From: Ranitomeya imitator
Taxonomy: Eukaryota
Direction: 5' to 3'
Length of the DNA: 64,000 bases
Assembly: GCF_032444005.1 (NCBI RefSeq)
Contig: NC_091283.1
Location: forward strand, 176,762,001 to 176,826,000
The notes under the pieces were generated by a model that did no database searches, was not told the origin of the DNA, and worked only from the letters and a program-made list of their open reading frames with translations. Position numbers and translations under genes: made by a program. Shown one piece after another: positions 16,126 to 64,000 of this stretch; within the stretch, counting starts at the first letter, position 1, and each line of letters opens with the position of its first letter.

Positions 16126-20890
<4,765 letters not shown>

Positions 20891-21042
20891 CTTGGCCACA
20901 TCCAAAAACCCCGCCCCTTCATCAGTAGGAGACAGAAAGCGAACCAATCAGCACGCAGAACGCAGCACCCTGTCACGGCCGGCAGAGGTATATAAGGGTA
21001 TGGTCACATGACTGGCGGTCACATGACGAGGTGGCGGCGATC
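20891..21042. promoter_or_regulatory. Compact bidirectional promoter PTGES2/BBLN
   Basis: 152 bp between divergent ATGs, GC/CpG-rich. GC box (CCCGCCCC ~20910), CCAAT 20944-20948, TATATAA 20989-20995, GGTCACATGAC twice (21002-21012, 21017-21027), and a ZNF143/SBS-like ACTACAAGTCCCAGC on the minus strand at 21153-21167. Confidence 0.75.
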
Positions 21043-38400: not shown

Positions 38401-40677
38401 ACCACCCTGCATCGCCGCTTCGACCCCCAACTCTGGACTCACGGAGGCATTGCATGTCAGTGTGTTTCATGCAGCAGCGTGCACATTTGTCCCTTTCAAG
38501 CACCAATTGTCTCCACACACTTGGATTCAGCCTAATGGTCTTCTCGCCGGCACATATTGATGCATAAAAGACACAGCACCGGCGCAACACCAGTAAGTGT
38601 TCTTTTCAACTTTTTGTGACTGGGACCTATTGTGCTATTTTTTCTTGGTGCATGATTGCTATTATCGGTGGTTGGTAGCGATTGGTAATCAGTATATCTA
38701 TTAAGATTGGTTATTTATTAATTGGTATATATTCAAAGCACTAAAGCCTCAAGGTTAATATAGAAACGGTCTTATTAACCAACTATTTATTTATTCCATT
38801 CTGAATAGGGTAGCGCGGTGACCTTTGTTTTAACTTTATTAGTTTTTTTTTGGTATTAATAGACTGAGCGCAGCAGCTGTCTAGGCACCAGCAGCTTTAA
38901 CCTATATCTAACTCCTTTGGGAGTGCCAGTGTGTCTAACATTATATAAATTTCTAGACCAGCCTCTCAGGTTAATATTATAATTGCTTGTATTTGATTGG
39001 ACCACGGCCGCTCCCCCAATGAATATATTATTTTCCTCTGAACACTCTTTGCCTAAATGTTCTCACAGATAGATAGTGTCAGGCTGTAATTGACATCTCT
39101 CTTCAAAAGAGCTAGAAGGTGTGAAATGTTTCCCCTTCTTCCTGGTTCCCAGCCAGTCCCCTTGGCGAGATTGGAGACAGCAGACTGCCTTCTCAAGATA
39201 CATATGTTGGCACCTTTGTGAGACCTGCAGTCTCCGGACATATGGTAAACTACTGCTGGTTACCCATATAAACCTATATATATTTCACTACACACATATA
39301 TACCTATGCATATTTCACTACACCCATGATGGCTATGGCCGCCGAATTTGGAGAGATTTGCTGACCATCTAATATGTATTGGGGTCTGCAGACGCTCTCC
39401 CAACAGATTACGTCAAGAGATAAACAAAGGGTGGGAATGTTGTGTTTCAGCACTTGTTCTTTCTGATGCTGCAGAGAGAAGTCATCGATACCGATTTCGA
39501 GCAAGAGAATACTCCACTCTTCTCTCTGAAAACTTGATTGACTGAACGTATACGTGAGTGAGGGTGGGTGGCAGGCGTTAGGAATAGCCATCCGATGAAC
39601 ATATGTACTATGCTTTTACTGCAAATCATCATGGACCTGAACGTCACATAACACAAGTTTACATGGCTGCAGATAGGCTAGGCTCACCTTGTGATACACA
39701 CGCGGCTGCTGAAAAGGCATGTGCGGGAACGTCATGCTCTGAGCTTTCACAGTTACACCCATTGGAGGAATACCCAGGATTGAGTGCCTTGCAGCTGCGG
39801 TAAAGAATGGAGGCATCGGCGGAGGCGCCACCATGCTGAGACCACGTAGGTTACCTACAAAACAAGTGACAAATCTTCAAATATAATAATTGTTGTATTG
39901 CAGGAACTCTCTTATCACAGGCAGGATTGCAATGATAGGTGCTCTGCTTGGAGTGAGACCGGGCATGTACACCATCAACCCACTCAAGTCAGTTATTTAC
40001 AGTGCCCCATTCCTGGTGGGTCCCCACGGTCAGCAAGTTATCCCCCATCTTCCCTCTGGAATCCTCTTAATAGCAGTTCATAATCATGCAAAGAAAATTA
40101 AAACCATATGAAGAAATAAACACCATCCAGTTTTAATGAGCGATTATAATCTGGGCGATGGCTTACACTCTCCTTGTGTTCTCATATGTAGGTCACTGTC
40201 CTAATTCTAGAATGCTGAACATGGAGGGGATCGGACCATCACAAATGAAACGAAAATAATGCAATCTACATACAGACATGGAAAGAACGGAGAAAGGGCA
40301 CGTCGTCCATTAGTAATGGGCATGAATAGGAAGCTTACCTTGCATCTGCTGCATTAGCAGAGCACGCTGTATCATGGGGTGAGTATTGAGAAGTCTGGCA
40401 GGATTGGCAGCCTGCAGGTTCAGCATCTGCTGCGGTTGCTGGTGCTGCACTGGGTTTGGCATTGGCCTGTTCAAAGACTGTATTAGTATGGAGAAGCATT
40501 ATATGGCAGGCGGTGAATGGCAGCAGGGTATGCTTACCTTGGCGCTGCATGCTGGACGGGCAGCGGATGCTGTGCACTCTGCGGATGGTGCGCTGGCGGC
40601 TGCACCGTGTGCTGCTGCTGCTGCAGTAGGTGCTGGAGCTGAATGAGCTGCTGTAACTGCTGCTGGTTGTTAAACAT
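26426..40677 (-). CDS. CIZ1: Cip1-interacting zinc finger protein 1, 15 coding exons, ~655 aa
   Basis: Phase-consistent exons 40677-40538, 40466-40339, 39854-39688, 34458-34314, 33359-33293, 32349-32309, 32199-32138, 32059-31889, 31806-31673, 30589-30505, 29935-29822, 29724-29572, 28622-28562, 28234-28113, 26803-26426 (1968 nt). Motifs: MFNNQQQ, QRALLMQQMQGNLRG, PAAKRARS, LKVTIQ, three zinc fingers (FCCYICK, RWCNVCQ..KHRRTQEHK, RPFCTVCSRHFKTPRKFVEHMKS), ITVDAVGCFEEDE acidic domain and a matrin-type finger (GHLCRLCHKFY..HCKSLVHFQN). The small central exons are less certain. Confidence 0.9.
28798..28980 (+). mobile_element. V-SINE-like retroposon, 3' part
   Basis: Core GGGTTTCCTCCGGGTACTCCTGTTTCCTCCCACA typical of V-SINEs, followed by a LINE-like tail ending AATAAAGATTATTATT. 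Confidence 0.65.
32659..33079. mobile_element. Harbinger-type MITE (second family)
   Basis: TTA flanks; termini GGCTTCTTTCACA / TGTGAAAGAGGCG; homologous to 35052-35452 and 40863-41236. Confidence 0.8.
35052..35452. mobile_element. Harbinger-type MITE (second family)
   Basis: TIR GGCTACTTTCACACTAG / CTAGTGTGAAAGTAGCC; flanks TTA and GTA. Confidence 0.8.
35476..39322 (-). mobile_element. Decayed Gmr1-like (Ty3/gypsy, integrase upstream of RT) LTR retrotransposon in a CIZ1 intron
   Basis: TG...CA ends with 5-bp TSD CCCAT (35471-35475, 39323-39327). LTR copies ~35940-36277 and ~38947-39292; PPT 36278-36290. Minus-strand order: integrase (GFPREMLTDQG..HPQTNGLCEHFN, 38179-37652), IN C-terminus (IFHVNMLK), RT (VLVPKKD..FCVDYRKLN..MDLSRGYWQIPL), RNase H (KECLAIVW..TDHNPL..NADGLS). 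gag/protease and part of RT are missing. Confidence 0.88.
37041..37388. mobile_element. Palindromic Harbinger-type MITE nested in the Gmr1-like element
   Basis: TTA TSD; termini GGCTGGGTTC / GAACTTAGCC; CpG-rich self-complementary interior. Confidence 0.8.
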
Positions 40678-40862
40678 CTTAAAGCAAAGGACCTAAGACA
40701 ACAGAGAAGAGCTGATCCTTTACGTCAATGGGGAGATCGAAAGTCTTGGAGGTGGGCTCCCCTCTGATCTTCAGAAGGAAATGGACACCACCCTGTAGCA
40801 CTGGCACTGCAGCCTAGAAATTGGCACCTTATGCCATCACTTTAAGGTGGAGAACCCCTTTA

Positions 40863-41236
40863 CGCTGCTTTCACACTTGCGTCGGTAAGCGGCCGTCGCA
40901 AAGCGTCGACGCGACGGACGTTGTGCAAATTTTGCACAACGTGGGCAGCGGATGCAGTTTTTCAACACATCCGCTGCCCATCCTAAGTCCCGGGAGGAGG
41001 GGGCGGAGTGCCGGCCGCGCATGCGCGGTAGGAAATGGCGGATCCGACGTACGAAAAAACGTTACATTTAACGTTTTTTTCGTGATGGTCCGCCAAAACA
41101 CGACGAATCCAGTGCATGACGGACGCGACGTATGGCCATACGTCGTGATCCGTCGGCAATACAAGTCTATGGGGAAAAAAAATGCATCCTGCGGGCATTG
41201 CGACAGATTTAAAACGACGCAAGTGTGAAGGTAGCC
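40863..41236. mobile_element. Harbinger-type MITE in CIZ1 intron 1
   Basis: TTA flanks; termini (C)GCTGCTTTCACACTT / AAGTGTGAAGGTAGCC; same family as 32659. Confidence 0.8.
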
Positions 41237-42566: not shown

Positions 42567-42900
42567 CGGTTAATGCTGAACGTTAATCCCCGGGCAGCGC
42601 TCCGCTTCCTCTGGACAGCCGGTCCTCCCCGCAGCCCCCAGGCCTCCTCCTCTCCTGCACCACAGCGCAGACAATGGCGCGGACCATGCACCACTGTGCA
42701 GCGCGCCCTCTGGCGGCCGGAGGTCGGACGTGCGCAGCTCACACTTGTTTAGCTTTCTACCACAAGGACACAAATGGGTTAAAAACAAATTGAGTCTCAT
42801 CAATAGAAAGGGTTAATGATGTGGTCCAGGTGGTGACCCCTCATACACCATAGTCTGTTGTAGTGAGCCCCCAAAACTACAGCTCCCAGCAAGCCCTGCC
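42567..42900 (-). promoter_or_regulatory. Probable CIZ1 non-coding first exon and CpG-rich promoter
   Basis: Minus-strand donor CCG|GTAAGA at 42566; CpG-rich 42540-42740; CTCF-like GCGCCCTCTGGCGGCC at 42703-42718; ZNF143/SBS-like ACTACAGCTCCCAGCAAGCCC at 42876-42896. The ATG exon (40677) begins directly after an acceptor, so an upstream exon is required. Confidence 0.6.
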
Positions 42901-43124
42901 AGTGTTACCAGATCTCCGGTCTGTGGCAATACAGCGTCTTGTCCCATCGGCCACTATTCTTCATAAATCTACAAGGTCTAAAATGTGCAGATCCATCCTG
43001 TATAAAGAGCAGTTATTGAGGGGTTAAAATGGTCTCCCCAGAGACCTACACGCTACACAGCACGGGGGTCTATGCTCAGCTGCTGTTGTCACTTCTGATT
43101 GGAAAATGGCCGAGAAATGGCTGC

Positions 43125-46100
43125 CACCCCCCATATAGTCTCCTCCCAGATGTGGGGGTCAGCGGCTGCCACCCCCCATATATTCTCCTCCCAGATGTGG
43201 GGGTCAGTGGTTGCCATCCCCCATATATTCTCCTCCCAGATGTGGGGGTCAGTGGCTGCCATCCCCCATATATTCTCTTCCCAGATGTGGGGGTCAGTCG
43301 CTGCCACCCCCCATATATTCTCCCAGATGTGGGGGTCAGTGGCTGCCATCCCCCATATATTCTCCTCCCAAATGTGGGGGTCAGCGGCTGCCACCCCCCA
43401 TATATTCTCCTCCCAGATGTGGGGGTCAGTGCTTGCCATCCCCCATATATTCTCCTCCCAGATGTGGGGGTCAGTCGCTGCCATCCCCCATATATTCTCT
43501 TCCCAGATGTGGGGGTCAGTCGCTGCCACCCCCCATATATTCTCCCAGATGTGGGGGTCAGTGGCTGCCATCCCCCATATATTCTCCTCCCAGATGTGGG
43601 GGTCAGCGGCTGCCACCCCCCATATATTCTCCTCCCAGATGTGGGGGTCAGTGGCTGCCACCCCCCATATATTCTCCTCCCAGATGTGGGGCTCTGCGGC
43701 ATTCACGCCCCATATATTCTCCCAGATGTGGGGGTCAGTGGCTGCCACCCCCCATATATTCTCCTCCCAGATGTGGGGGTCAGTGGCTGCCACCCCCCAT
43801 ATATTCTCCTCCCAGATGTGGGGGTCAGTGGCTGCCATCCCCCATATATTCTCTTCCCAGATGTGGGGGTCAGTGGCTGCCACCCCCCATATATTCTTCT
43901 CCCAGATGTGGGGGTCAGCGGCATTCACGCCCCATATATTCTCCCAGATGTGGGGGTCAGTGGCTGCCACCCCCCATATATTCTCCTCCCAGATGTGGGG
44001 GTCAGTGGCTGCCATCCCCCATATATTCTCTTCCCAGATGTGGGGGTCAGTGGCTGCCACCCCCCATATATTCTCCTCCCAGATGTGGGGGTCAGTGGTT
44101 GCCATCCCCCATATATTCTCCTCCCAGATGTGGGGGTCAGTCGCTGCCATCCCCCATATATTCTCTTCCCAGATGTGGGGGTCAGTCGCTGCCACCCCCC
44201 ATATATTCTCCCAGATGTGGGGGTCAGTGGCTGCCATCCCCCATATATTCTCCTCCCAAATGTGGGGGTCAGCGGCTGCCACCCCCCATATATTCTCCTC
44301 CCAGATGTGGGGGTCAGTGGTTGCCATCCCCCCTTTATATATTCTCCTCCCAGATGTGGGGGTCAGTCGCTGCCATCCCCCATATATTCTCTTCCCAGAT
44401 GTGGGGGTCAGTCGCTGCCACCCCCCATATAGTCTCCCAGATGTGGGGGTCAGTGGCTGCCATCCCCCATATATTCTCCTCCCAGATGTGGGGGTCAGCG
44501 GCTGCCACCCCCCATATATTCTCCTCCCAGATGTGGGGGTCAGTGGCTGCCACCCCCCATATATTCTCCTCCCAGATGTGGGGGTCAGTGGCTGCCACCC
44601 CCCATATATTCTCCTCCCAGATGTGGGGGTCAGCGGCATTCACGCCCCATATATTCTCCCAGATGTGGGGGTCAGTGGCTGCCACCCCCCATATATTCTC
44701 CTCCCAGATGTGGGGGTCAGTGGCTGCCATCCCCCATATATTCTCTTCCCAGATGTGGGGGTCAGTGGCTGCCACCCCCCATATATTCTCCTCCCAGATG
44801 TGGGGGTCAGCGGCATTCACGCCCCATATATTCTCCCAGATGTGGGGCTCAGCGGCTGCCACCCTCCATATATTCTCCTCCCAGATGTGGGGGTCAGCGG
44901 CATTCACCCCCCATATATTCTCCTCCCAGATGTGGGGGTCAGCGGCATTCACCCCCCATATATTCTACTCCCAGATGTGGGGCTCTGCGGCATTCACCCC
45001 CCATATATTCTCCTCCCAGATGTGGAGGTCAGCGGCATTCACCCCCCATACATTCTCTCAGATGTGGGGCTCAGCGGCATTCACCCCCCATATATTCTCC
45101 TCCCAGATGTGGGGGTCAGCGGCATTCACGCCCCATATATTCTCCCAGATGTGGGGCTCAGCGGCTGCCACCCCCCATATATTCTCCTCCCAGATGTGGG
45201 GGTCAGCGGCATTCACCCCCCATATATTCTCCTCCCAGATGTGGGGGTCAGCGGCATTCACCCCCCATATATTCTCCCAGATGTGGGGCTCAGCGGCATT
45301 CACCCCCCATATATTCTCTTCCCAGATGTGGGGCTCAGCGGCATTCACCCCCCATATATTGTCCTCCCAGATGTGGGGGTCAGCAGCATTCACCCCCCAT
45401 ATATTCTCCCAGATGTGGGGGTCAGCGGCATTCACCCCCCATATATTCTCCTCCCAGATGTGGGGCTCTGCGGCATTCACCCCCCATATATTCTCCTCCC
45501 AGATGTGGAGGTGAGCGGCATTCACCCCCCATATATTCTCTCAGATGTGGGGCACAGCGGCATTCACCCCCCATATATTCTCCTCCCAGATGTGGGGCTC
45601 TGCGGCATTCACCCCCCATATATTCTCTTCCCAGATGTGGGGGTCAGCGGCATTCACCCCCCATATATTCTCCTCCCAGATGTGGGGGTCAGTGGCATTC
45701 ACCCCCCATATATTCTCCTCCCAGATGTGGGGGTCAGCGGCATTCACCCCCCATATATTCTCCCAGATGTGGGGCTCTGCGGCATTCACGCCCCATATAT
45801 TCTCCCAGATGTGGGGGTCAGTGGCTGCCACCCCCCATATATTCTCCTCCCAGATGTGGGGGTCAGTGGCTGCCACCCCCCATATATTCTCCTCCCAGAT
45901 GTGGGGGTCAGCGTCATTCACCCCCCATATATTCTCCCAGATGTGGGGCTCTGCGGCATTCACGCCCCATATATTCTCCTCCCAGATGTGGGGGTCAGTG
46001 GCTGCCACCCCCCATATATTCTCCTCCCAGATGTGGGGGTCAGCGGCATTCACGCCCCATATATTCTCCCAGATGTGGGGGTCAGTGGCTGCCACCCCCC

Positions 46101-49100
46101 ATATATTCTCCTCCCAGATGTGGGGGTCAGTGGCTGCCATCCCCCATATATTCTCTTCCCAGATGTGGGGGTCAGTGGCTGCCACCCCCCATATATTCTC
46201 CTCCCAGATGTGGGGGTCAGCGGCATTCACGCCCCATATATTCTCCCAGATGTGGGGCTCAGCGGCTGCCACCCTCGATATATTCTCCTCCCAGATGTGG
46301 GGGTCAGCGGCATTCACCCCCCATATATTCTCCTCCCAGATGTGGGGGTCAGCGGCATTCACCCCCCATATATTCTACTCCCAGATGTGGGGCTCTGCGG
46401 CATTCACCCCCCATATATTCTCCTCCCAGATGTGGAGGTCAGCGGCATTCACCCCCCATATATTCTCTCAGATGTGGGGCTCAGCGGCATTCACCCCCCA
46501 TATATTCTCCTCCCAGATGTGGGGGTCAGCGGCATTCACGCCCCATATATTCTCCCAGATGTGGGGCTCAGCGGCTGCCACCCCCCATATATTCTCCTCC
46601 CAGATGTGGGGGTCAGCGGCATTCACCCCCCATATATTCTCCTCCCAGATGTGGGGGTCAGCGGCATTCACCCCCCATATATTCTCCCAGATGTGGGGCT
46701 CAGCGGCATTCACCCCCCATATATTCTCTTCCCAGATGTGGGGCTCAGCGGCATTCACCCCCCATATATTCTCCTCCCAGATGTGGGGGTCAGCAGCATT
46801 CACCCCCCATATATTCTCCCAGATGTGGGGGTCAGCGGCATTCACCCCCCATATATTCTCCTCCCAGATGTGGGGCTCTGCGGCATTCACCCCCCATATA
46901 TTCTCCTCCCAGATGTGGAGGTGAGCGGCATTCACCCCCCATATATTCTCTCAGATGTGGGGCACAGCGGCATTCACCCCCCATATATTCTCCTCCCAGA
47001 TGTGGGGCTCTGCGGCATTCACTCCCCATATATTCTCTTCCCAGATGTGGGGGTCAGCGGCATTCACCCCCCATATATTCTCCTCCCAGATGTGGGGGTC
47101 AGTGGCATTCACCCCCCATATATTCTCCTCCCAGATGTGGGGGTCAGCGGCATTCACCCCCCATATATTCTCCCAGATGTGGGGGTCAGCGGCATTCACC
47201 CCCCATATATTCTCCTCCCAATTGGGGGCTCTGCGGCATTCACCCCCCATATATTCTCCTCCCAGATGTGGGGCTCTGCGGCATTCACCCCCCATATATT
47301 CTCCCAGATGTGGGGGTCAGTGGCTGCCACCCCCCATATATTCTCCTCCCAGATGTGGGGGTCAGTGGCTGCCACCCCCCATATATTCTCCTCCCAGATG
47401 TGGGGGTCAGTGGCTGCCACCCCCCATATATTCTCCTCCCAGATGTGGGGGTCAGTGGCTGCCACCCCCCATATATTCTCCTCCCAGATGTGGGGGTCAG
47501 TGGTTGCCATCCCCCATATATTCTCCTCCCAGATGTGGGGGTCAGCGGCTGCCACCCCCCATATATTCTCCTCCCAGATGTGGGGGTCAGTGGTTGCCAT
47601 CCCCCATATATTCTCCTCCCAGATGTGGGGGTCAGTGGCTGCCATCCCCCATATATTCTCTTCCCAGATGTGGGGGTCAGTCGCTGCCACCCCCCATATA
47701 TTCTCCCAGATGTGGGGGTCAGTGGCTGCCATCCCCCATATATTCTCCTCCCAAATGTGGGGGTCAGCGGCTGCCACCCCCCATATATTCTCCTCCCAGA
47801 TGTGGGGGTCAGTGCTTGCCATCCCCCATATATTCTCCTCCCAGATGTGGGGGTCAGTCGCTGCCATCCCCCATATATTCTCTTCCCAGATGTGGGGGTC
47901 AGTCGCTGCCACCCCCCATATATTCTCCCAGATGTGGGGGTCAGTGGCTGCCATCCCCCATATATTCTCCTCCCAGATGTGGGGGTCAGCGGCTGCCACC
48001 CCCCATATATTCTCCTCCCAGATGTGGGGGTCAGTGGCTGCCACCCCCCATATATTCTCCTCCCAGATGTGGGGCTCTGCGGCATTCACGCCCCATATAT
48101 TCTCCCAGATGTTGGGGTCAGTGGCTGCCACCCCCCATATATTCTCCTCCCAGATGTGGGGGTCAGTGGCTGCCACCCCCCATATATTCTCCTCCCAGAT
48201 GTGGGGGTCAGTGGCTGCCACCCCCCATATATTCTTCTCCCAGATGTGGGGGTCAGCGGCATTCACGCCCCATATATTCTCCCAGATGTGGGGGTCAGTG
48301 GCTGCCACCCCCCATATATTCTCCTCCCAGATGTGGGGGTCAGTGGCTGCCATCCCCCATATATTCTCTTCCCAGATGTGGGGGTCAGTGGCTGCCACCC
48401 CCCATATATTCTCCTCCCAGATGTGGGGGTCAGTGGTTGCCATCCCCCATATATTCTCCTCCCAGATGTGGGGGTCAGTCGCTGCCATACCCCCATATAT
48501 TCTCTTCCCAGATGTGGGGGTCAGTCGCTGCCACCCCCCATATAGTCTCCCAGATGTGGGGGTCAGTGGCTGCCATCCCCCATATATTCTCCTCCCAAAT
48601 GTGGGGGTCAGCAGCTGCCACCCCCCATATATTCTCCTCCCAGATGTGGGGGTCAGTGGTTGCCATCCCCCATATATTCTCCTCCCAGATGTGGGGGTCA
48701 GTCGCTGCCATCCCCCATATATTCTCTTCCCAGATGTGGGGGTCAGTCGCTGCCACCCCCCATATAGTCTCCCAGATGTGGGGGTCAGTGGCTGCCATCC
48801 CCCATATATTCTCCTCCCAGATGTGGGGGTCAGCGGCTGCCACCCCCCATATATTCTCCTCCCAGATGTGGGGGTCAGTGGCTGCCACCCCCCATATATT
48901 CTCCTCCCAGATGTGGGGCTCTGCGGCATTCACGCCCCATATATTCTCCCAGATGTGGGGGTCAGTGGCTGCCATCCCCCATATATTCTCCTCCCAGATG
49001 TGGGGGTCAGTGGCTGCCACCCCCCATATATTCTCCTCCCAGATGTGGGGGTCAGCGGCATTCACGCCCCATATATTCTCCCAGATGTGGGGGTCAGTGG

Positions 49101-52100
49101 CTGCCACCCCCCATATATTCTCCTCCCAGATGTGGGGGTCAGTGGCTGCCATCCCCCATATATTCTCTTCCCAGATGTGGGGGTCAGTGGCTGCCACCCC
49201 CCATATATTCTCCTCCCAGATGTGGGGGTCAGCGGCATTCACGCCCCATATATTCTCCCAGATGTGGGGCTCAGCGGCTGCCACCCTCCATATATTCTCC
49301 TCCCAGATGTGGGGGTCAGCGGCATTCACCCCCCATATATTCTCCTCCCAGATGTGGGGGTCAGCGGCATTCACCCCCCATATATTCTACTCCCAGATGT
49401 GGGGCTCTGCGGCATTCACCCCCCATATATTCTCCTCCCAGATGTGGAGGTCAGCGGCATTCACCCCCCATACATTCTCTCAGATGTGGGGCTCAGCGGC
49501 ATTCACCCCCCATATATTCTCCTCCCAGATGTGGGGGTCAGCGGCATTCACGCCCCATATATTCTCCCAGATGTGGGGCTCAGCGGCTGCCACCCCCCAT
49601 ATATTCTCCTCCCAGATGTGGGGGTCAGCGGCATTCACCCCCCATATATTCTCCTCCCAGATGTGGGGGTCAGCGGCATTCACCCCCCATATATTCTCCC
49701 AGATGTGGGGCTCAGCGGCATTCACCCCCCATATATTCTCTTCCCAGATGTGGGGCTCAGCGGCATTCACCCCCCATATATTCTCCTCCCAGATGTGGGG
49801 GTCAGCAGCATTCACCCCCCATATATTCTCCCAGATGTGGGGGTCAGCGGCATTCACCCCCCATATATTCTCCTCCCAGATGTGGGGCTCTGCGGCATTC
49901 ACCCCCCATATATTCTCCTCCCAGATGTGGAGGTGAGCGGCATTCACCCCCCATATATTCTCTCAGATGTGGGGCACAGCGGCATTCACCCCCCATATAT
50001 TCTCCTCCCAGATGTGGGGCTCTGCGGCATTCACCCCCCATATATTCTCTTCCCAGATGTGGGGGTCAGCGGCATTCACCCCCCATATATTCTCCTCCCA
50101 GATGTGGGGGTCAGTGGCATTCACCCCCCATATATTCTCCTCCCAGATGTGGGGGTCAGCGGCATTCACCCCCCATATATTCTCCCAGATGTGGGGCTCT
50201 GCGGCATTCACGCCCCATATATTCTCCTCCCAGATGTGGGGGTCAGTGGCTGCCACCCCCCATATATTCTCCTCCCAGATGTGGGGGTCAGCGGCATTCA
50301 CGCCCCATATATTCTCCCAGATGTGGGGGTCAGTGGCTGCCACCCCCCATATATTCTCCTCCCAGATGTGGGGGTCAGTGGCTGCCATCCCCCATATATT
50401 CTCTTCCCAGATGTGGGGGTCAGTGGCTGCCACCCCCCATATATTCTCCTCCCAGATGTGGGGGTCAGCGGCATTCACGCCCCATATATTCTCCCAGATG
50501 TGGGGCTCAGCGGCTGCCACCCTCGATATATTCTCCTCCCAGATGTGGGGGTCAGCGGCATTCACCCCCCATATATTCTCCTCCCAGATGTGGGGGTCAG
50601 CGGCATTCACCCCCCATATATTCTACTCCCAGATGTGGGGCTCTGCGGCATTCACCCCCCATATATTCTCCTCCCAGATGTGGAGGTCAGCGGCATTCAC
50701 CCCCCATATATTCTCTCAGATGTGGGGCTCAGCGGCATTCACCCCCCATATATTCTCCTCCCAGATGTGGGGGTCAGCGGCATTCACGCCCCATATATTC
50801 TCCCAGATGTGGGGCTCAGCGGCTGCCACCCCCCATATATTCTCCTCCCAGATGTGGGGGTCAGCGGCATTCACCCCCCATATATTCTCCTCCCAGATGT
50901 GGGGGTCAGCGGCATTCACCCCCCATATATTCTCCCAGATGTGGGGCTCAGCGGCATTCACCCCCCATATATTCTCTTCCCAGATGTGGGGGTCAGCGGC
51001 ATTCACCCCCCATATATTCTCCTCCCAGATGTGGGGCTCTGCGGCATTCACCCCCCATATATTCTCCTCCCAGATGTGGAGGTGAGCGGCATTCACCCCC
51101 CATTTATTCTCTCAGATGTGGGGCACAGCGGCATTCACCCCCCATATATTCTCCTCCCAGATGTGGGGGTCAGCGGCATTCACCCCCCATATATTCTCCT
51201 CCCAGATGTGGGGGTCAGTGGCATTCACCCCCCATATATTCTCCTCCCAGATGTGGGGGTCAGCGGCATTCACCCTGCATATATTCTCCCAGATGTGGGG
51301 CTCTGCGGCATTCACGCCCCATATATTCTCCTCCCAGATGTGGGGGTCAGCGGCATTCACCCCCCATATATTCTCCTCCCAGATGTGGGGGTCAGTGGCA
51401 TTCACCCCCCATATATTCTCCTCCCAGATGTGGGGGTCAGCGGCATTCACCCCCCATATATTCTCCCAGATGTGGGGCTCTGCGGCATTCACGCCCCATA
51501 TATTCTCCTCCCAGATGTGGGGGTCAGTGGCTGCCACCCCCCATATATTCTCCTCCCAGATGTGGGGGTCAGCGGCATTCACGCCCCATATATTCTCCCA
51601 GATGTGGGGGTCAGTGGCTGCCACCCCCCATATATTCTCCTCCCAGATGTGGGGGTCAGTGGCTGCCATCCCCCATATATTCTCTTCCCAGATGTGGGGG
51701 TCAGTGGCTGCCACCCCCCATATATTCTCCTCCCAGATGTGGGGGTCAGCGGCATTCACCCCCCATATATTCTCCTCCCAGATGTGGGGGTCAGCGGCAT
51801 TCACCCCCCATATATTCTCCCAGATGTGGGGCTCTGCGGCATTCACGCCCCATATATTCTCCCAGATGTGGGGGTCAGTGGCTGCCACCCCCCATATATT
51901 CTCCTCCCAGATGTGGGGGTCAGTGGCTGCCACCCCCCATATATTCTCCTCCCAGATGTGGGGGTCAGCGTCATTCACCCCCCATATATTCTCCCAGATG
52001 TGGGGCTCTGCGGCATTCACGCCCCATATATTCTCCTCCCAGATGTGGGGGTCAGTGGCTGCCACCCCCCATATATTCTCCTCCCAGATGTGGGGGTCAG

Positions 52101-55100
52101 CGGCATTCACGCCCCATATATTCTCTCAGATGTGGGGGTCAGTGGCTGCCACCCCCCATATATTCTCCTCCCAGATGTGGGGGTCAGTGGCTGCCATCCC
52201 CCATATATTCTCTTCCCAGATGTGGGGGTCAGTGGCTGCCACCCCCCATATATTCTCCTCCCAGATGTGGGGGTCAGCGGCATTCACGCCCCATATATTC
52301 TCCCAGATGTGGGGCTCAGCGGCTGCCACCCTCGATATATTCTCCTCCCAGATGTGGGGGTCAGCGGCATTCACCCCCCATATATTCTCCTCCCAGATGT
52401 GGGGGTCAGCGGCATTCACCCCCCATATATTCTACTCCCAGATGTGGGGCTCTGCGGCATTCACCCCCCATATATTCTCCTCCCAGATGTGGAGGTCAGC
52501 GGCATTCACCCCCCATATATTCTCTCAGATGTGGGGCTCAGCGGCATTCACCCCCCATATATTCTCCTCCCAGATGTGGGGGTCAGCGGCATTCACGCCC
52601 CATATATTCTCCCAGATGTGGGGCTCAGCGGCTGCCACCCCCCATATATTCTCCTCCCAGATGTGGGGGTCAGCGGCATTCACCCCCCATATATTCTCCT
52701 CCCAGATGTGGGGGTCAGCGGCATTCACCCCCCATATATTCTCCCAGATGTGGGGCTCAGCGGCATTCACCCCCCATATATTCTCTTCCCAGATGTGGGG
52801 CTCAGCGGCATTCACCCCCCATATATTCTCCTCCCAGATGTGGGGGTCAGCAGCATTCACCCCCCATATATTCTCCCAGATGTGGGGGTCAGCGGCATTC
52901 ACCCCCCATATATTCTCCTCCCAGATGTGGGGCTCTGCGGCATTCACCCCCCATATATTCTCCTCCCAGATGTGGAGGTGAGCGGCATTCACCCCCCATA
53001 TATTCTCTCAGATGTGGGGCACAGCGGCATTCACCCCCCATATATTCTCCTCCCAGATGTGGGGCTCTGCGGCATTCACTCCCCATATATTCTCTTCCCA
53101 GATGTGGGGGTCAGCGGCATTCACCCCCCATATATTCTCCTCCCAGATGTGGGGGTCAGTGGCATTCACCCCCCATATATTCTCCTCCCAGATGTGGGGG
53201 TCAGCGGCATTCACCCCCCATATATTCTCCCAGATGTGGGGGTCAGCGGCATTCACCCCCCATATATTCTCCTCCCAATTGGGGGCTCTGCGGCATTCAC
53301 CCCCCATATATTCTCCTCCCAGATGTGGGGCTCTGCGGCATTCACCCCCCATATATTCTCCCAGATGTGGGGGTCAGTGGCTGCCACCCCCCATATATTC
53401 TCCTCCCAGATGTGGGGGTCAGTGGCTGCCACCCCCCATATATTCTCCTCCCAGATGTGGGGGTCAGTGGCTGCCACCCCCCATATATTCTCCTCCCAGA
53501 TGTGGGGGTCAGTGGCTGCCACCCCCCATATATTCTCCTCCCAGATGTGGGGGTCAGTGGTTGCCATCCCCCATATATTCTCCTCCCAGATGTGGGGGTC
53601 AGCGGCTGCCACCCCCCATATATTCTCCTCCCAGATGTGGGGGTCAGTGGTTGCCATCCCCCATATATTCTCCTCCCAGATGTGGGGGTCAGTGGCTGCC
53701 ATCCCCCATATATTCTCTTCCCAGATGTGGGGGTCAGTCGCTGCCACCCCCCATATATTCTCCCAGATGTGGGGGTCAGTGGCTGCCATCCCCCATATAT
53801 TCTCCTCCCAAATGTGGGGGTCAGCGGCTGCCACCCCCCATATATTCTCCTCCCAGATGTGGGGGTCAGTGCTTGCCATCCCCCATATATTCTCCTCCCA
53901 GATGTGGGGGTCAGTCGCTGCCATCCCCCATATATTCTCTTCCCAGATGTGGGGGTCAGTCGCTGCCACCCCCCATATATTCTCCCAGATGTGGGGGTCA
54001 GTGGCTGCCATCCCCCATATATTCTCCTCCCAGATGTGGGGGTCAGCGGCTGCCACCCCCCATATATTCTCCTCCCAGATGTGGGGGTCAGTGGCTGCCA
54101 CCCCCCATATATTCTCCTCCCAGATGTGGGGCTCTGCGGCATTCACGCCCCATATATTCTCCCAGATGTTGGGGTCAGTGGCTGCCACCCCCCATATATT
54201 CTCCTCCCAGATGTGGGGGTCAGTGGCTGCCACCCCCCATATATTCTCCTCCCAGATGTGGGGGTCAGTGGCTGCCACCCCCCATATATTCTTCTCCCAG
54301 ATGTGGGGGTCAGCGGCATTCACGCCCCATATATTCTCCCAGATGTGGGGGTCAGTGGCTGCCACCCCCCATATATTCTCCTCCCAGATGTGGGGGTCAG
54401 TGGCTGCCATCCCCCATATATTCTCTTCCCAGATGTGGGGGTCAGTGGCTGCCACCCCCCATATATTCTCCTCCCAGATGTGGGGGTCAGTGGTTGCCAT
54501 CCCCCATATATTCTCCTCCCAGATGTGGGGGTCAGTCGCTGCCATCCCCCATATATTCTCTTCCCAGATGTGGGGGTCAGTCGCTGCCACCCCCCATATA
54601 GTCTCCCAGATGTGGGGGTCAGTGGCTGCCATCCCCCATATATTCTCCTCCCAAATGTGGGGGTCAGCGGCTGCCACCCCCCATATATTCTCCTCCCAGA
54701 TGTGGGGGTCAGTGGTTGCCATCCCCCATATATTCTCCTCCCAGATGTGGGGGTCAGTCGCTGCCATCCCCCATATATTCTCTTCCCAGATGTGGGGGTC
54801 AGTCGCTGCCACCCCCCATATAGTCTCCCAGATGTGGGGGTCAGTGGCTGCCATCCCCCATATATTCTCCTCCCAGATGTGGGGGTCAGCGGCTGCCACC
54901 CCCCATATATTCTCCTCCCAGATGTGGGGGTCAGTGGCTGCCACCCCCCATATATTCTCCTCCCAGATGTGGGGCTCTGCGGCATTCACGCCCCATATAT
55001 TCTCCCAGATGTGGGGGTCAGTGGCTGCCATCCCCCATATATTCTCCTCCCAGATGTGGGGGTCAGTGGCTGCCACCCCCCATATATTCTCCTCCCAGAT

Positions 55101-58100
55101 GTGGGGGTCAGCGGCATTCACGCCCCATATATTCTCCCAGATGTGGGGGTCAGTGGCTGCCACCCCCCATATATTCTCCTCCCAGATGTGGGGGTCAGTG
55201 GCTGCCATCCCCCATATATTCTCTTCCCAGATGTGGGGGTCAGTGGCTGCCACCCCCCATATATTCTCCTCCCAGATGTGGGGGTCAGCGGCATTCACGC
55301 CCCATATATTCTCCCAGATGTGGGGCTCAGCGGCTGCCACCCTCCATATATTCTCCTCCCAGATGTGGGGGTCAGCGGCATTCACCCCCCATATATTCTC
55401 CTCCCAGATGTGGGGGTCAGCGGCATTCACCCCCCATATATTCTACTCCCAGATGTGGGGCTCTGCGGCATTCACCCCCCATATATTCTCCTCCCAGATG
55501 TGGAGGTCAGCGGCATTCACCCCCCATACATTCTCTCAGATGTGGGGCTCAGCGGCATTCACCCCCCATATATTCTCCTCCCAGATGTGGGGGTCAGCGG
55601 CATTCACGCCCCATATATTCTCCCAGATGTGGGGCTCAGCGGCTGCCACCCCCCATATATTCTCCTCCCAGATGTGGGGGTCAGCGGCATTCACCCCCCA
55701 TATATTCTCCTCCCAGATGTGGGGGTCAGCGGCATTCACCCCCCATATATTCTCCCAGATGTGGGGCTCAGCGGCATTCACCCCCCATATATTCTCTTCC
55801 CAGATGTGGGGCTCAGCGGCATTCACCCCCCATATATTCTCCTCCCAGATGTGGGGGTCAGCAGCATTCACCCCCCATATATTCTCCCAGATGTGGGGGT
55901 CAGCGGCATTCACCCCCCATATATTCTCCTCCCAGATGTGGGGCTCTGCGGCATTCACCCCCCATATATTCTCCTCCCAGATGTGGAGGTGAGCGGCATT
56001 CACCCCCCATATATTCTCTCAGATGTGGGGCACAGCGGCATTCACCCCCCATATATTCTCCTCCCAGATGTGGGGCTCTGCGGCATTCACCCCCCATATA
56101 TTCTCTTCCCAGATGTGGGGGTCAGCGGCATTCACCCCCCATATATTCTCCTCCCAGATGTGGGGGTCAGTGGCATTCACCCCCCATATATTCTCCTCCC
56201 AGATGTGGGGGTCAGCGGCATTCACCCCCCATATATTCTCCCAGATGTGGGGCTCTGCGGCATTCACGCCCCATATATTCTCCTCCCAGATGTGGGGGTC
56301 AGTGGCTGCCACCCCCCATATATTCTCCTCCCAGATGTGGGGGTCAGCGGCATTCACGCCCCATATATTCTCCCAGATGTGGGGGTCAGTGGCTGCCACC
56401 CCCCATATATTCTCCTCCCAGATGTGGGGGTCAGTGGCTGCCATCCCCCATATATTCTCTTCCCAGATGTGGGGGTCAGTGGCTGCCACCCCCCATATAT
56501 TCTCCTCCCAGATGTGGGGGTCAGCGGCATTCACGCCCCATATATTCTCCCAGATGTGGGGCTCAGCGGCTGCCACCCTCGATATATTCTCCTCCCAGAT
56601 GTGGGGGTCAGCGGCATTCACCCCCCATATATTCTCCTCCCAGATGTGGGGGTCAGCGGCATTCACCCCCCATATATTCTACTCCCAGATGTGGGGCTCT
56701 GCGGCATTCACCCCCCATATATTCTCCTCCCAGATGTGGAGGTCAGCGGCATTCACCCCCCATATATTCTCTCAGATGTGGGGCTCAGCGGCATTCACCC
56801 CCCATATATTCTCCTCCCAGATGTGGGGGTCAGCGGCATTCACGCCCCATATATTCTCCCAGATGTGGGGCTCAGCGGCTGCCACCCCCCATATATTCTC
56901 CTCCCAGATGTGGGGGTCAGCGGCATTCACCCCCCATATATTCTCCTCCCAGATGTGGGGGTCAGCGGCATTCACCCCCCATATATTCTCCCAGATGTGG
57001 GGCTCAGCGGCATTCACCCCCCATATATTCTCTTCCCAGATGTGGGGGTCAGCGGCATTCACCCCCCATATATTCTCCTCCCAGATGTGGGGCTCTGCGG
57101 CATTCACCCCCCATATATTCTCCTCCCAGATGTGGAGGTGAGCGGCATTCACCCCCCATATATTCTCTCAGATGTGGGGCACAGCGGCATTCACCCCCCA
57201 TATATTCTCCTCCCAGATGTGGGGCTCTGCGGCATTCACCCCCCATATATTCTCTTCCCAGATGTGGGGGTCAGCGGCATTCACCCCCCATATATTCTCC
57301 TCCCAGATGTGGGGGTCAGTGGCATTCACCCCCCATATATTCTCCTCCCAGATGTGGGGGTCAGCGGCATTCACCCCCCATATATTCTCCCAGATGTGGG
57401 GCTCTGCGGCATTCACGCCCCATATATTCTCCTCCCAGATGTGGGGGTCAGTGGCTGCCACCCCCCATATATTCTCCTCCCAGATGTGGGGGTCAGCGGC
57501 ATTGACGCCCCATATATTCTCCCAGATGTGGGGGTCAGTGGCTGCCACCCCCCATATATTCTCCTCCCAGATGTGGGGGTCAGTGGCTGCCATCCCCCAT
57601 ATATTCTCTTCCCAGATGTGGGGGTCAGTGGCTGCCACCCCCCATATATTCTCCTCCCAGATGTGGGGGTCAGCGGCATTCACGCCCCATATATTCTCCC
57701 AGATGTGGGGCTCAGCGGCTGCCACCCTCCATATATTCTCCTCCCAGATGTGGGGGTCAGCGGCATTCACCCCCCATATATTCTCCTCCCAGATGTGGGG
57801 GTCAGCGGCATTCACCCCCCATATATTCTACTCCCAGATGTGGGGCTCTGCGGCATTCACCCCCCATATATTCTCCTCCCAGATGTGGAGGTCAGCGGCA
57901 TTCACCCCCCATATATTCTCTCAGATGTGGGGCTCAGCGGCATTCACCCCCCATATATTCTCCTCCCAGATGTGGGGGTCAGCGGCATTCACGCCCCATA
58001 TATTCTCCCAGATGTGGGGCTCAGCGGCTGCCACCCCCCATATATTCTCCTCCCAGATGTGGGGGTCAGCGGCATTCACCCCCCATATATTCTCCTCCCA

Positions 58101-59391
58101 GATGTGGGGGTCAGCGGCATTCACCCCCCATATATTCTCCCAGATGTGGGGCTCAGCGGCATTCACCCCCCATATATTCTCTTCCCAGATGTGGGGCTCA
58201 GCGGCATTCACCCCCCATATATTCTCCTCCCAGATGTGGGGGTCAGCAGCATTCACCCCCCATATATTCTCCCAGATGTGGGGGTCAGCAGCATTCACCC
58301 CCCATATATTCTCCTCCCAGATGTGGGGCTCTGCGGCATTCACCCCCCATATATTCTCCTCCCAGATGTGGAGGTGAGCGGCATTCACCCCCCATATATT
58401 CTCTCAGATGTGGGGCACAGCGGCATTCACCCCCCATATATTCTCCTCCCAGATGTGGGGCTCTGCGGCATTCACCCCCCATATATTCTCTTCCCAGATG
58501 TGGGGGTCAGCGGCATTCACCCCACATATATTCTCCTCCCAGATGTGGGGGTCAGTGGCATTCACCCCCCATATATTCTCCTCCCAGATGTGGGGGTCAG
58601 CGGCATTCACCCCCCATATATTCTCCTCCCAGATGTGGGGCTCTGCGGCATTCACCCCCCATATATTCTCCCAGATGTGGGGGTCAGTGGCTGCCACCCC
58701 CCATATATTCTCCTCCCAGATGTGGGGGTCAGTGGCTGCCACCCCCCATATATTCTCCTCCCAGATGTGGGGGTCAGTGGCTGCCACCCCCCATATATTC
58801 TCCTCCCAGATGTGGGGGTCAGTGGCTGCCACCCCCCATATATTCTCCTCCCAGATGTGGGGGTCAGTGGTTGCCATCCCCCATATATTCTCCTCCCAGA
58901 TGTGGGGGTCAGTGGCTGCCATCCCCCATATATTCTCTTCCCAAATGTAGGGGTCAGTGGCTGCCACCCCCCATATATTCTGCTCCCAGATGCAGGGGTC
59001 AGCGGCATTTACCCCCCATATATTCTCCCAGATGTGGGGCTCAGCGGCTTTCCCCCCCTATATATTCTCCCAGATGTGGGGGCTCAGCAGCATTTACCCC
59101 CCATATATTCTCCCAGATGTGGGGCTCAGCAGCATTCACCCCCATATATTCTCCTCCCAGATGTGGAGGCTCAGCGGCATTCACCCCCCATATATTCTCC
59201 CAGATGTGGGGCACAGCGGCATTCACCCCCATATATTCTCCTCCCAGATGTAGGGGTCAGCGGCATTCACCCCCCATATATTCTCCCAGATGTGGGGCTC
59301 TGCGGTATTCACCCCCATATATTCTCCTCCCAGATGTAGGGGTCAGCGGCATTCACCCCCCATATATTCTCCCAGATGTGGGGCTCATATA
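43125..59391. repeat. Giant minisatellite/satellite array, 45-bp and 42-bp units, roughly 360-370 copies, with higher-order repeats
   Basis: Consensus CCAGATGTGGGGGTCAGTGGCTGCCACCCCCCATATATTCTCCTC (45 nt). The 42-nt variant lacks one CTC; a second subtype carries GCGGCATTCAC in place of GTGGCTGCCAC. Diagnostic variants recur at fixed offsets. Confidence 0.98.
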
Positions 59392-61639
59392 TACTGCGCT
59401 TCAGAAGGAGGCAGCCTGCTTCTAGCTGGTCTCCCGCTGATGTTCCTCTCCTTTTGCTATGACTTTGTTTCTCACTCACTGCAACACGATTCCTTTCAAT
59501 GTCTCTTTCTTTGGATGCTGCCGCATGGGATGCAGGCGCTGCTCCGTGTACCCTCGCCTTCCGCAGGCCGCAGTCTGGAGCTGGCTGGAACGCACTCCAA
59601 CCAGCCTCTGCCAAACTCGGTCGGGACTCACTGACTATCTCCTACTCCCTCTAGTCAGCTTCTGTCTAACTTCCTACACCTGGCCAGGACTGTGACTCAG
59701 AGACAACTGCATTCCCACCTTCAACCACTGGAGGGAACCCAAAAGCAGAATTCACAACACTCTGATGACAACGGCTCCGAGTCTCTAGGTGGCGATGGCA
59801 GGGAGTCGATGGGCACTAGGAGGGTCTCGTCGGTGGCCGGGGCAGGTTCGGATCGCTTACCTGCCGCCGTGGCGTCTCCGGTGCCAGTCTCCTCCACTAC
59901 AGGTGGCGGCTCCGTCGGCTGGCTACGCTGCTGCTCCTGGACGCTAGCAGTTGTGCGGTACCAGGATTTCTGGAGCTGGCGACACAGCTCCTCGACTTCC
60001 GCGCCGAGAACCTCCGGGTTCATACAAGGCGGGGAGGCCTCTTCGGCTTCTGATTGATGGACAGCACTGCGGGTATTCGCCCCCTCCTCCTCCTCTGGAG
60101 GGCGGTTCCTTCTTCCTCCACCATCCCAGACTAGGAGGTGGATGGGCATATTTTTCTGACATAGTAGTATCTGTGAGGGGATGGCTCCATTTTCGCGCTG
60201 TTCTTCCAGGCTATGCCCACTATGACACGCCCCACTCCTCCTTCATGCCGCATGGCGCTGTAATGGCGGTGGTTTGGGCGGGAATTTTGGCGGTAAATGG
60301 CATTACACAGTCTTTAAGCACAAACAGTTCAAATACGATTCTGGCACAGTTCTTATGCGCACATGACCCGATTTTTCAGGCTTAAGTAGATCCTGTTTGT
60401 GACGCCAAAATGGATCGCCCCCACGTTAGGGCAGTGGGGTACTCGGTACCGGGCCCCTTCGGTTCTCAGTGGGGATGTCACGGTGGCTGACCTGGTCCGT
60501 GGCCCTAGGGGAACGTCCGCTGATAAATGTGGGGATAGGTCTTTAAAAGGATAATGTTCGTGACGCCACCTGTGGTATTCGGTCAGGGTGACCGACGCTG
60601 CTTAGGGGTCCGCTGGGGTGATGTTATGGTAGCTAGATGGTATACCTTCCCACAGGTGAAGTATGTCCCCAGGGCTTCCCAGAATGTAGATGGTGGATGA
60701 TGTAAGGCGCAGTGAATAACGAGGACACAAGGTTGCAGTCTCTTTACCTTTACTGAAGGCTTCAGCATCCACAGTCCAGGGTAGGGACCACAGAGTAGGC
60801 AGAGTCCGGCCGGTCTGAAGGCAAATCCAGAGTCTCCTTATCCAGGTGGAATTCAATAGCCTTCCCCTAGCGCTGGGCGTTGTAGTACCTCCCTGCTGAG
60901 CAACTCGGTAAGGTCCTCACAACTATTGTAGATGTTAAGTCTCTTCTCTCTGTCCCCCTGACGGATAGGATAAACTCGTATGACTGGTGGCCTGAGGCTT
61001 TTTATAGGGACTCTAGAGACGCCCCAGCCCCCACAAGTTGCCACCGTGCCTCCTGAATATATGGTCGGGCAGCCAACATGGAATCAACTGTCCTGCCAGT
61101 CTCTGAAGTAACGGCATAGAGATCCTTACTCCCTCGGTGTTCTGGCTACCGGTACTGCACTTCAGAAGGAGGCAGCCTGCTTCTAGCTGGTCTCCCGCTG
61201 ATGTTCCTCTCCTTTTGCTATGACTTAGTTTCTCACTCACTGCAACACAATTCCTTTCAATGTCTCTTTCTTTGGATGCTGCCGCATGGGATGCAGGCGC
61301 AGCTCCGTGTACCCTCGCCTTCCGCAGGCCGCAGTCTGGAGCTGGCTGGAACCCACTCCAACCAGCCTCTGCCAAACTCGGTCGGGACTCACTGACTATC
61401 TCCTACTCCCTCCAGTCAGCTTCTGTCTAACTTCCTAACCAACCCACCAGTTTTACCCAAGTGTGATGAGTGCCCTAGTAGATGGAAGCTTAGCTCCCCC
61501 TGGCAGACTGGAGTGTGAAGTGTGTTTTGTGGTTGTGATACCTGGACAGAAGAGCTCCTTCATTGCCTTCAGACGTAACATCACTCCCCCTGGTGGAAGA
61601 ATATCATTACTGCAACGACCAGGACTCTGGGGCGCTGCA
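59392..61639 (-). mobile_element. Truncated, internally deleted LTR retrotransposon remnant
   Basis: LTR 60571-61639 (TG...CA); partial second LTR copy 59392-59676 = 61153-61437 (offset 1761); PBS-like matches at 60555-60568 and 60390-60407; degenerate gag-like ORFs at 60162-59721. The left end is cut by the satellite, so no TSD can be tested. Confidence 0.72.
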
Positions 61640-64000
61640 TTAGCACCCATGGAATTCGCCTTCCATGTATTCTCCCAGATGTGAGGGCCAGCGGCATCCA
61701 CCCTCCATGTATTCTACTCCCAGATGTGGAAGTCAGAGATATCCACCCTCCATGTATTCTCCTCCCAAACGTGGGGACCAGTGGCGGCCACCCCCCATGT
61801 ATTCTACCAGATATGAGGGCCAGCGGCATTCACCCCCCCATGTACACTGTGTGCAAAATTATTAGGAAAGTTGTATTTTAGAGGATTATTTTATTATTGA
61901 TCAACAACTATGTTCTCAATTAACCCAAAAGACTCATAAATATCAAAGCTTAATATTTTTGGAAGTTGGAGTGGTTTTTTTTTAGATTTGGCTATCTTAG
62001 GAGGATATCTGTTTGTGCAGGTAACTATTACTGTGCAGAATTATTAGGCAACTTAATAAAAACCAAATATATTCCCATCTCACTTGTTTATTTTCACCAG
62101 GTAAACCAACATCACTGCACAAAATTTAGAAATAAACATTTCTGAGATGCAAAAACAAAACCCCAAAAAATTAGTGACCAATGTAACCACCTTTCCTTAT
62201 GATGACATTCAACAGCCTCCATCCATAGATTCTGTCAGTTGCTTGATCTGTTTACGATCAACATTACGTGCAGCAGCAACCACAGCCTCCCAGACACTGC
62301 TCCGAGAGGTGGACTGTTTTCCCTCCCTGTAGATCTCACATTTTATGAGGGACCACAGGTTCTCTATGAGGTTCAGATCAGGTGAACAAGCGGGCCATGT
62401 CATTATTTTTTCTCCTTTGAGACCTTTACTGGCCAGCCACACTGTGGAGTAGTTGGAGGCATCTGATGGAGCATTGTCCTGCATGAAAATCATGTTTTTG
62501 TTGAACGATACCGACTTCTTCCTGTACCACTGCTTGAATGAGTTGTCTTCTAGAAACTGGCAGTAGGTCTGGGAGTTGAGCTTCACTCCATCCTCAACCC
62601 GAAAAGGTCCCACAAGTTCATCTTTGATGATACCAGCCCATACCAGTACCCCACCTCCATCTTGCTGGCGTCTGAGTCGGAGTGGAGCTCTCTGCCCTTT
62701 ACTGATCCAGCCTCTGACCCATCCATCTGGCCCATCAAGAGTCACTCTCATTTCATTAGTCCATAAAACCTTTGAAAAGTCAGTCTTAAGATATTCCTTG
62801 GCCCAGTCTTGACGTTATATCTTCTGTATCTTGTTCAAAGGTGGTCGTTTTCAGCCTTTCTTACCTTGGCCATGTCCCTGAGTATCGCACACCTTGTGCT
62901 TTTTGTTACTCCAGTAACGTTGCAGCTCTGAAATATGGCAAAACTGGTGGCAAATGGCATCTTGGCAGCTTCACGCTTGATTTTCCTCAATTCATTTGTT
63001 ATTTTGCGCCTTTTTTGCCCAACACGCTTCTTGTGACACTGTTGGCTATTTGCCATGAAATTCTTGATTGTTCGGTGATCACGCTTCAAAAGTTTGGCAA
63101 TTTCAAGACTGCTGCATCCCTCTGTAAGACATCTCACAATTTTGGACTTTTCAGAGTCCTTCAAATCTTTCTTCTGACCCATTTTGCCAAAGGAAAGGAA
63201 GTTGCCCAATAATTAAGCACACCTTATATAGGGTTTTGATTTCATTAGACAACACCCCTCCTCATTACAGAGATGCACATCACCTGAATTACTTAATTGG
63301 TAGTTGGCTCTCAAACCTGAACAGCTTGGAGTAGGACAACATGTATAAAAAGTATCATGTGATCAAAATACAACTTGCCTAATAATTCTGCACACAGTGT
63401 ATTCTCCTCGCAGATGTGGGGGTCAGCGGCATCCACCCTCCATGTATTCTCCTCCCAGATGTGGAGACCAGTGGCGGCCACCCCCCATGTATTCTACCAG
63501 ATATGAGGGCCAGCGGCATCCACTGTGCAAGTATTCTCCTCCCAAATGTGGAGGCCAGCGGCACCCACCCTCCATGTATTCTCCTCCAGAAGTGGGTGCC
63601 ATCGCCATCCAAATCCCATGTATTCTCCTCCCAAAAGTGGGTGCCATTGGTATCCAAACCCCATGTATTCTCAACCCAGATGTGCAGGCCAGCGGCAGTC
63701 ACCCTCCATGTATTCCCCACCCAGATGTGCAGGCCAGCGGTGGCCACCCTCCATGTATTCTCCTCCCAGATGAAGGTGCCAGTGGCATCCACCCTCCATG
63801 TATTCTCCTTCCAGATGTTGGAGCCAGTGGCAGCCACCCTATATGCACAGTATTCTCCCACAAGATGTGGGGGCTGGTGGCATCCTCTTTCCATGTATTC
63901 TCCTCCCAGATGTGGGGGCCAGCTGCAGACACCTCCCATGTATTCTCTACCGAGATGTGGGGGCCAGCGGCAGCCACCGTCCATGCCTTCTTCACCTAGA
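61640..64000. repeat. Older, diverged version of the 45/42-bp satellite (CATGTATTCTC subtype), interrupted by Tc1
   Basis: Units such as CCATGTATTCTCCTCCCAGATGTGGAGACCAGTGGCGGCCACCCC at 61650-61844 and 63401-64000, with much higher unit-to-unit divergence. Confidence 0.9.
61845..63399 (-). mobile_element. Tc1-like transposon (IR/DR type), frameshifted transposase
   Basis: TA TSD (61843-61844, 63400-63401) inside a satellite unit; TIR CACTGTGTGCAAAATTATTAGG / CCTAATAATTCTGCACACAGTG; inner direct-repeat copies ~62033-62055 and ~63200-63222; transposase fragments MGQKKDL.., TDEMRVTLDGPDG, QDNAPS, SPDLNLIENLW. Confidence 0.93.

Follow-up and report, generated by a model that had tools for sequence, protein, structure and literature searches.

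A probably non-coding young minisatellite array with multi-thousand-codon open frames upstream of a CIZ1-like gene in Ranitomeya imitator

In a 64,000-nucleotide stretch of the Ranitomeya imitator genome (NCBI RefSeq assembly GCF_032444005.1, contig NC_091283.1, positions 176,762,001 to 176,826,000 of the forward strand; hereafter called the "window" and numbered from its first letter), we analyzed a tandem array of 45- and 42-nt units at positions 43118–59391, upstream of a CIZ1-like gene. The plus strand of this array is open for thousands of codons, and an earlier reading made from the letters of the window, without database searches (the "sequence-only reading"), regarded it as either an exceptional non-coding satellite or a source of giant modular repeat proteins, with the non-coding state as the default. 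The array is built of nested copies and its mutation spectrum resembles that of neutral DNA, and we conclude, with a probability of about 0.9, that the array is an ordinary minisatellite or small satellite, which is GC-rich, young, and non-coding. The default is therefore supported, while the term "exceptional" is not, because the openness arises from a stop-free, A-poor consensus unit.

Tandem Repeats Finder (TRF) detected one tandem array at 43125–59387, with a period of 45, 367.8 copies, and 89% matches, and also called the same array at periods of 132 and 177. On visual inspection, the array opens with a partial unit at ~43118, and the whole young, homogenized array comprises ~366 units. 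Cutting the array at a 12-nt anchor yielded 365 units, including 261 of 45 nt and 95 of 42 nt; the two forms differ by one CTC in a CTCCTC micro-repeat, as the sequence-only reading had described for 43125–59391. The units represent 55 distinct sequences. The short unit is thus repeated head to tail, as in a satellite, and the satellite-like higher-order periodicity and block homogenization are also present, with identity peaks at lags of 132 and 177 nt. At the 3′ edge (59070–59391), segmentation and reading of the sequence revealed degenerate units of 43 and 44 nt, with frame-breaking +1 and −1 indels. No strand is assigned to the array, to its internal blocks, or to the satellite remnants and the inserted element with direct repeats on its 3′ side.

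The plus strand of the array is pyrimidine-rich and A-poor, with a GC skew of −0.20 and an AT skew of −0.19. The observed/expected ratio (o/e) of CpG is 0.22, and the single CpG of the consensus unit is the most mutated site, now being TpG in 139 units. Methylated repeats usually show such decay, which suggests that the array is methylated in the germline. Three plus-strand units fold as single-stranded DNA better than shuffled sequences (z = −3.4), and a C6/G5 hairpin is possible in each unit.

The copying has taken place in blocks. In a map of the unit types, a string of ~27 units recurs at least eight times, and a super-repeat spans ~136 units. A lag scan detected many blocks of 1.2–1.3 kb with 99% identity within the array, as well as a 5.6-kb block present twice, at 45649–51219 and 51706–57275, with 99.65% identity over 2849 + 2734 nt at lags of 6057 and 6056. 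The first copy has a private +1 insertion at ~48486, and the second shares with the first five plus-strand stops and the −1 frameshift, as found in the stop and unit lists. Since the units were copied in blocks, several features of the array arose once and were then duplicated: the −1 frameshifts at positions 47173 and 53230 represent a single mutation, propagated by the ~6057-bp duplication, and the 18 plus-strand stops include five that duplicate another five (lag 6056/6057). This block copying, from the nested ~1.2-kb blocks to the 5.6-kb block, with 55 distinct units in total, means that the array contains few independent mutations.

Translation confirmed the 4297-codon open reading frame (ORF) at 43099–55992 and the three plus-strand peptide registers that the sequence-only reading had reported. 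This ORF alternates between two of the peptide registers. In the other two plus frames, the longest open stretches are 3523 and 1003 codons, and a 467-codon frame beginning with the ATG at 43029 extends into the array. The plus frames are thus open over long stretches, as had been claimed, although not throughout, since the plus strand contains 18 stops (4, 5, and 9 in the respective absolute frames). The further claim of five open frames out of six holds for part of the array only: the minus strand has 540 stops, and its longest open stretch is 729 codons. Among the 356 regular units, two minus registers are blocked in 132 and three in 16, so that ~42% of the units block two or more.

Why does the plus strand read through? 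On its plus strand, the majority unit is free of TAA, TAG, and TGA; on its minus strand, it has a single stop. Such a unit is not rare, as stops are absent from a given strand in 30% of composition-matched circular 45-mers, and from one strand in 14% of the real 45-mers from the rest of the window. Because every stop codon requires an A, the plus strand is A-poor, and the consensus is stop-free, the openness requires no selection. A length divisible by three would occur by coincidence in one unit out of three, and the 42-nt form is one trinucleotide slip away from the 45-nt form. The giant plus-strand ORFs are therefore a passive by-product of an A-poor, stop-free unit with a length divisible by three and of recent copying.

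In order to examine coding constraint, we treated distinct variant types, rather than repeat units, as the independent observations. Four substitution types, found in 4, 8, 5, and 1 units, account for all 18 plus-strand stops. A stop would result from 13 (9.6%) of the 135 single substitutions that the consensus can undergo, and the four stop-creating types among the 38 distinct types observed agree with the 3.7 expected (binomial P for four or fewer = 0.70). Copy number does not distinguish the stop-creating types from the remaining ones (Mann–Whitney p = 0.53). When the variant types were reassigned to random substitutions of the same class, with their copy numbers kept, 18 or fewer stop occurrences were obtained in 28% of the runs. 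Furthermore, no significant synonymous excess of variant types was found in any of the six frames on both strands.

The indels point in the same direction. The off-length units in the core are one of 49 nt at 44301 (+4), one of 46 nt at 48462 (+1), and an 89-nt pair (45 + 44; −1) at 47173 that appears again at 53230. At the 3′ edge, units of 43, 44, 43, 44, and 44 nt occupy 59070–59330, where they were amplified as a 43 + 44 pair. The four frame changes noticed by the sequence-only reading are thus present in the units at 44301, 47173, 48462, and 53230, except that two of them are one mutation and the five units at the 3′ edge had been overlooked. Counted independently, one indel type preserves the frame (the recurrent CTC slip), versus at least five that do not: +4, −1, and +1 in the core, and +1 and −1 at the 3′ edge. 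This spectrum is the opposite of frame-preserving, and the array does not deserve that description. Neither stops nor frame-breaking indels are depleted relative to neutral expectation, and synonymous changes do not significantly exceed non-synonymous ones, as they would in a protein-coding sequence; instead, the mutation pattern is that of a satellite free of coding constraint. The sequence-only reading had asked beforehand whether the stop and indel counts match the neutral expectation for a recently amplified array, and they do.

Next, we searched for relatives of the translated repeats. A search of 5.8 billion protein clusters with a 400-residue repeat stretch returned no match. When 1.84 billion representatives were searched with 433 residues drawn from two registers, 127 matches were obtained (best E 1.5e-23); in 13 of the best 17, the aligned parts are unrelated repeats with a period of ~15 residues, none of these has the peptide motifs of the array, and several themselves resemble translated tandem DNA. 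Neither a recognizable homolog nor a known domain, as expected of a protein-coding sequence, was thereby obtained, and an exact-product look-up returned no gene on record for the 467-residue ATG-initiated product. Three public, predicted proteins (P0001, P0008, and P0012) consist of near-perfect 15-residue repeats and resemble translated 45-bp tandem DNA. Such entries suggest that ORFs in stop-free satellites are a common output of gene-calling programs. At the RNA level, no Rfam family, and accordingly no ribozyme, was found at the gathering thresholds across the whole window. A 22-nt degenerate core of the unit was not found in metagenome contigs, four sub-strings of the unit were not found in the searchable literature, and the literature on poison-frog satellites contained nothing specific to this array.

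The array is followed on its 3′ side by a diverged version of the 45-nt satellite, which is older than the array itself and has been invaded by transposons. Remnants of it were detected by TRF and a repeat search at 61672–61844 (74% matches) and from 63398 past the end of the window at 64000 (75% matches). The young and old arrays are separated by an inserted element at 59392–61437, with two LTR (long terminal repeat)-like direct repeats of 285 nt (59392–59676 and 61153–61437; 98% identical). The ~1.5 kb between these direct repeats lacks a recognizable pol gene, and the insertion may be a small non-autonomous LTR-type element. A Tc1/mariner-type transposon on the minus strand (61843–63401), identified by an inverted-repeat search, its ORFs, and its sequence, splits the older array; it was inserted at a TA within an old unit, with TA duplication, is bounded by terminal inverted repeats of 37 nt, and contains transposase frames in a decayed state (ORFs at 62209–62751 and 62835–63209). 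The old units flanking this transposon (61708–61833) recur at 63398–63523 with 91% identity. At 63515–63535, the place in the second copy that corresponds to the transposon insertion, a short string resembles the transposon end (CACTGTGCAAG); it may represent the footprint of an excision, or else what remained after the duplication. The old consensus is also stop-free on both strands, and the plus-strand stop density is about fivefold higher in the older copies (5.3 per kb) than in the young core (1.1 per kb). On the minus strand of the 12 clean old units, 8 stops are present versus 9.8 simulated (P 0.33).

Considering these structures, we propose the following history. An old 45-nt tandem repeat would have occupied the region and been invaded by the Tc1/mariner and LTR-like elements. 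One variant of it would then have been re-amplified recently, probably by unequal crossing-over or replication slippage, and the C6/G5 hairpin of the units may have favored slippage. The growth would have proceeded in nested rounds, from 45/42-nt units to 132/177-nt higher-order repeats, then to ~1.2-kb blocks, and finally to a 6.06-kb block.

The sequence-only reading also placed the array next to the CIZ1 promoter, and this is supported by the minus-strand gene matching PF23330 (described below) and by a CpG-richer patch at 42600–42799 (GC 0.61, CpG o/e 0.73), although the exact placement of the promoter is inferred. A GTAAGA splice donor on the minus strand at ~42567 and the only ZNF143-type motif in the window (42876–42895), identified by what we take to be the pattern of this motif, fit a non-coding first exon and promoter of the CIZ1-like gene at 42568–42895 on the minus strand. 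The array starts ~220 bp past the ZNF143-type motif and ~360 bp past the CpG-richer patch, and would thus begin ~220–550 bp upstream of the putative promoter, on its divergent side, or ~360–550 bp upstream of the putative first exon.

This location leads to one of the alternatives, in which the array gives rise to a long non-coding upstream-antisense RNA or acts as a cis-regulatory or chromatin element near the CIZ1-like promoter. Besides the proximity to the ZNF143-type motif and the CpG-richer patch, the plus strand lacks AATAAA or ATTAAA from the array until 62055 (~19 kb), and the array has ~366 repetitions of what, as read by eye, are presumably E-box, CACCC-like, and GGGTCA motifs. The low CpG ratio and the CpG-to-TpG decay, however, suggest a methylated, silent repeat rather than an active CpG island; moreover, the Rfam search was negative, and neutral amplification fully accounts for the structure. 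We therefore consider this alternative improbable. Divergent CIZ1-like transcription that runs unterminated through the array and yields long repeat RNA or polypeptides with a function or a cost is more improbable still. The idea of giant modular repeat proteins encoded by the array, in which frameshifts would switch the peptide type, has the long plus-strand frames and the 467-codon ATG frame in its favor, and is nevertheless the least credible: stop-creating variants occur at the neutral rate without a significant synonymous excess, the independent indels are mostly frame-breaking, the peptide searches returned no relative, and the 4297-codon frame begins at a TTG (bacterial table) and hops between registers. 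It is also unlikely, to about the same degree as a regulatory or RNA role, that the array is real but that mis-joined or duplicated reads in the assembly have artificially created part of its length and of the internal 6-kb duplication. Long homogeneous arrays are hard to assemble, and the two 5.6-kb blocks are nearly identical and exactly one block length apart. Nevertheless, these copies differ by a 1-nt indel and ~20 substitutions and the block order is non-trivial and non-periodic, both of which would be expected more of genuine sequence than of an assembly that had collapsed or looped.

Several observations weigh against an ordinary non-coding repeat. In the best (plus) frame, 14 synonymous variant types are present versus 9.2 expected (P 0.056), a value uncorrected for the six frames and based on small, non-independent counts. 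The 12 clean old units have 2 plus-strand stops versus 5.2 simulated (one-sided P 0.09), where the numbers are likewise small, uncorrected, and non-independent. The position on the divergent side of the putative promoter, with no plus-strand poly(A) hexamer before 62055, makes transcription possible. Finally, the copy number and the internal duplications are those of the assembly.

As a young non-coding satellite, the array resembles the Jeffreys-type GC-rich minisatellites, or variable number tandem repeats (VNTRs), and the euchromatic higher-order satellites, in its unit of tens of bases, its strand asymmetry, its head-to-tail higher-order periods, homogenized blocks, degenerate edge units, and CpG decay, and its intergenic location near a gene. 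Its 16-kb length lies between those of classical minisatellites, which are shorter, and of centromeric satellites, which are longer. It shares a unit length divisible by three and very long open frames with protein-coding tandem-repeat genes, such as those for mucin-type and giant repeat proteins. In contrast to these genes, it shows no sign of selection in any frame, tolerates frame-breaking indels, and has no relatives and no evident exon or start context. The array thus provides a caution: a tandem unit that has no stops and a length divisible by three yields ORFs of several thousand codons automatically, and a neutral array looks constrained when its repeat units are counted as independent, a signal that disappears when distinct variant types are counted. 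It also documents the renewal of an intergenic frog satellite, with a transposon-riddled old array beside a re-amplified core. Furthermore, it is likely to be a hyper-variable site beside the CIZ1-like promoter, and could serve as a VNTR marker.

Other sources and copies of the unit were considered and rejected. Local alignment of segments of the 5′ flank to the unit scored no better than shuffled sequences, and the similarity between the flank and the unit seen in a MAFFT alignment is not significant. The anchor matches elsewhere in the window, at 24588, 31283, and 31956, are chance occurrences without unit context. The array is also not a repeat internal to a transposable element: its 5′ flank is unique promoter-proximal sequence, and the transposons on the 3′ side were inserted into the older array and are not its carriers.

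The CIZ1-like gene is encoded on the minus strand. Its first coding exon (40540–40677) starts at 40677 and is translated into M-F-N-N followed by a Q-rich tract. A C2H2 zinc-finger exon at 30496–30681 matches Pfam PF23330 (E 1.9e-15; 56.5 bits versus a cut-off of 27), a jaz-type zinc finger (zf-C2H2_jaz, 28.8 bits) lies at 29720–29935, and domain look-ups identified a matrin-type zinc-finger exon at 28041–28268. The CIZ1 MH3-like exon gave generic matrin-type zinc-finger leads only (PDB and ESM-Atlas). The C2H2 and matrin-type zinc fingers, the Q-rich N-terminus, and the neighborhood are all those of CIZ1, and we take the gene to be the ortholog of human CIZ1, in a region presumably syntenic with 9q34.11. 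The neighboring gene, PTGES2, spans 19334–20947 on the same strand, and its exon at 19334–19915 encodes the glutaredoxin-like domain (PDB 1z9h, E 3e-28; Pfam Glutaredoxin).

Several further repeats are present in the window. The introns of the CIZ1-like gene contain three copies of a CpG-rich repeat (32594–33348, 35060–35572, and 40821–41236), with similar ORF translations and a CpG o/e of up to 1.77 (41000–41199). Fragments of an LTR-retrotransposon pol (reverse transcriptase/RNase H and integrase; Pfam PF17917, 69.7 bits) are also located within this gene, at 36318–38218 on the minus strand. Downstream of the gene, a Tc1-type transposase (PF01498) occupies 11702–12521 on the minus strand. 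Finally, a near-perfect palindrome at 8473–9283 consists of two 402-nt arms that are 99% complementary and 7 nt apart, and contains near-identical 141-residue ORFs at 8651–9076 on the plus strand and 8680–9105 on the minus strand.

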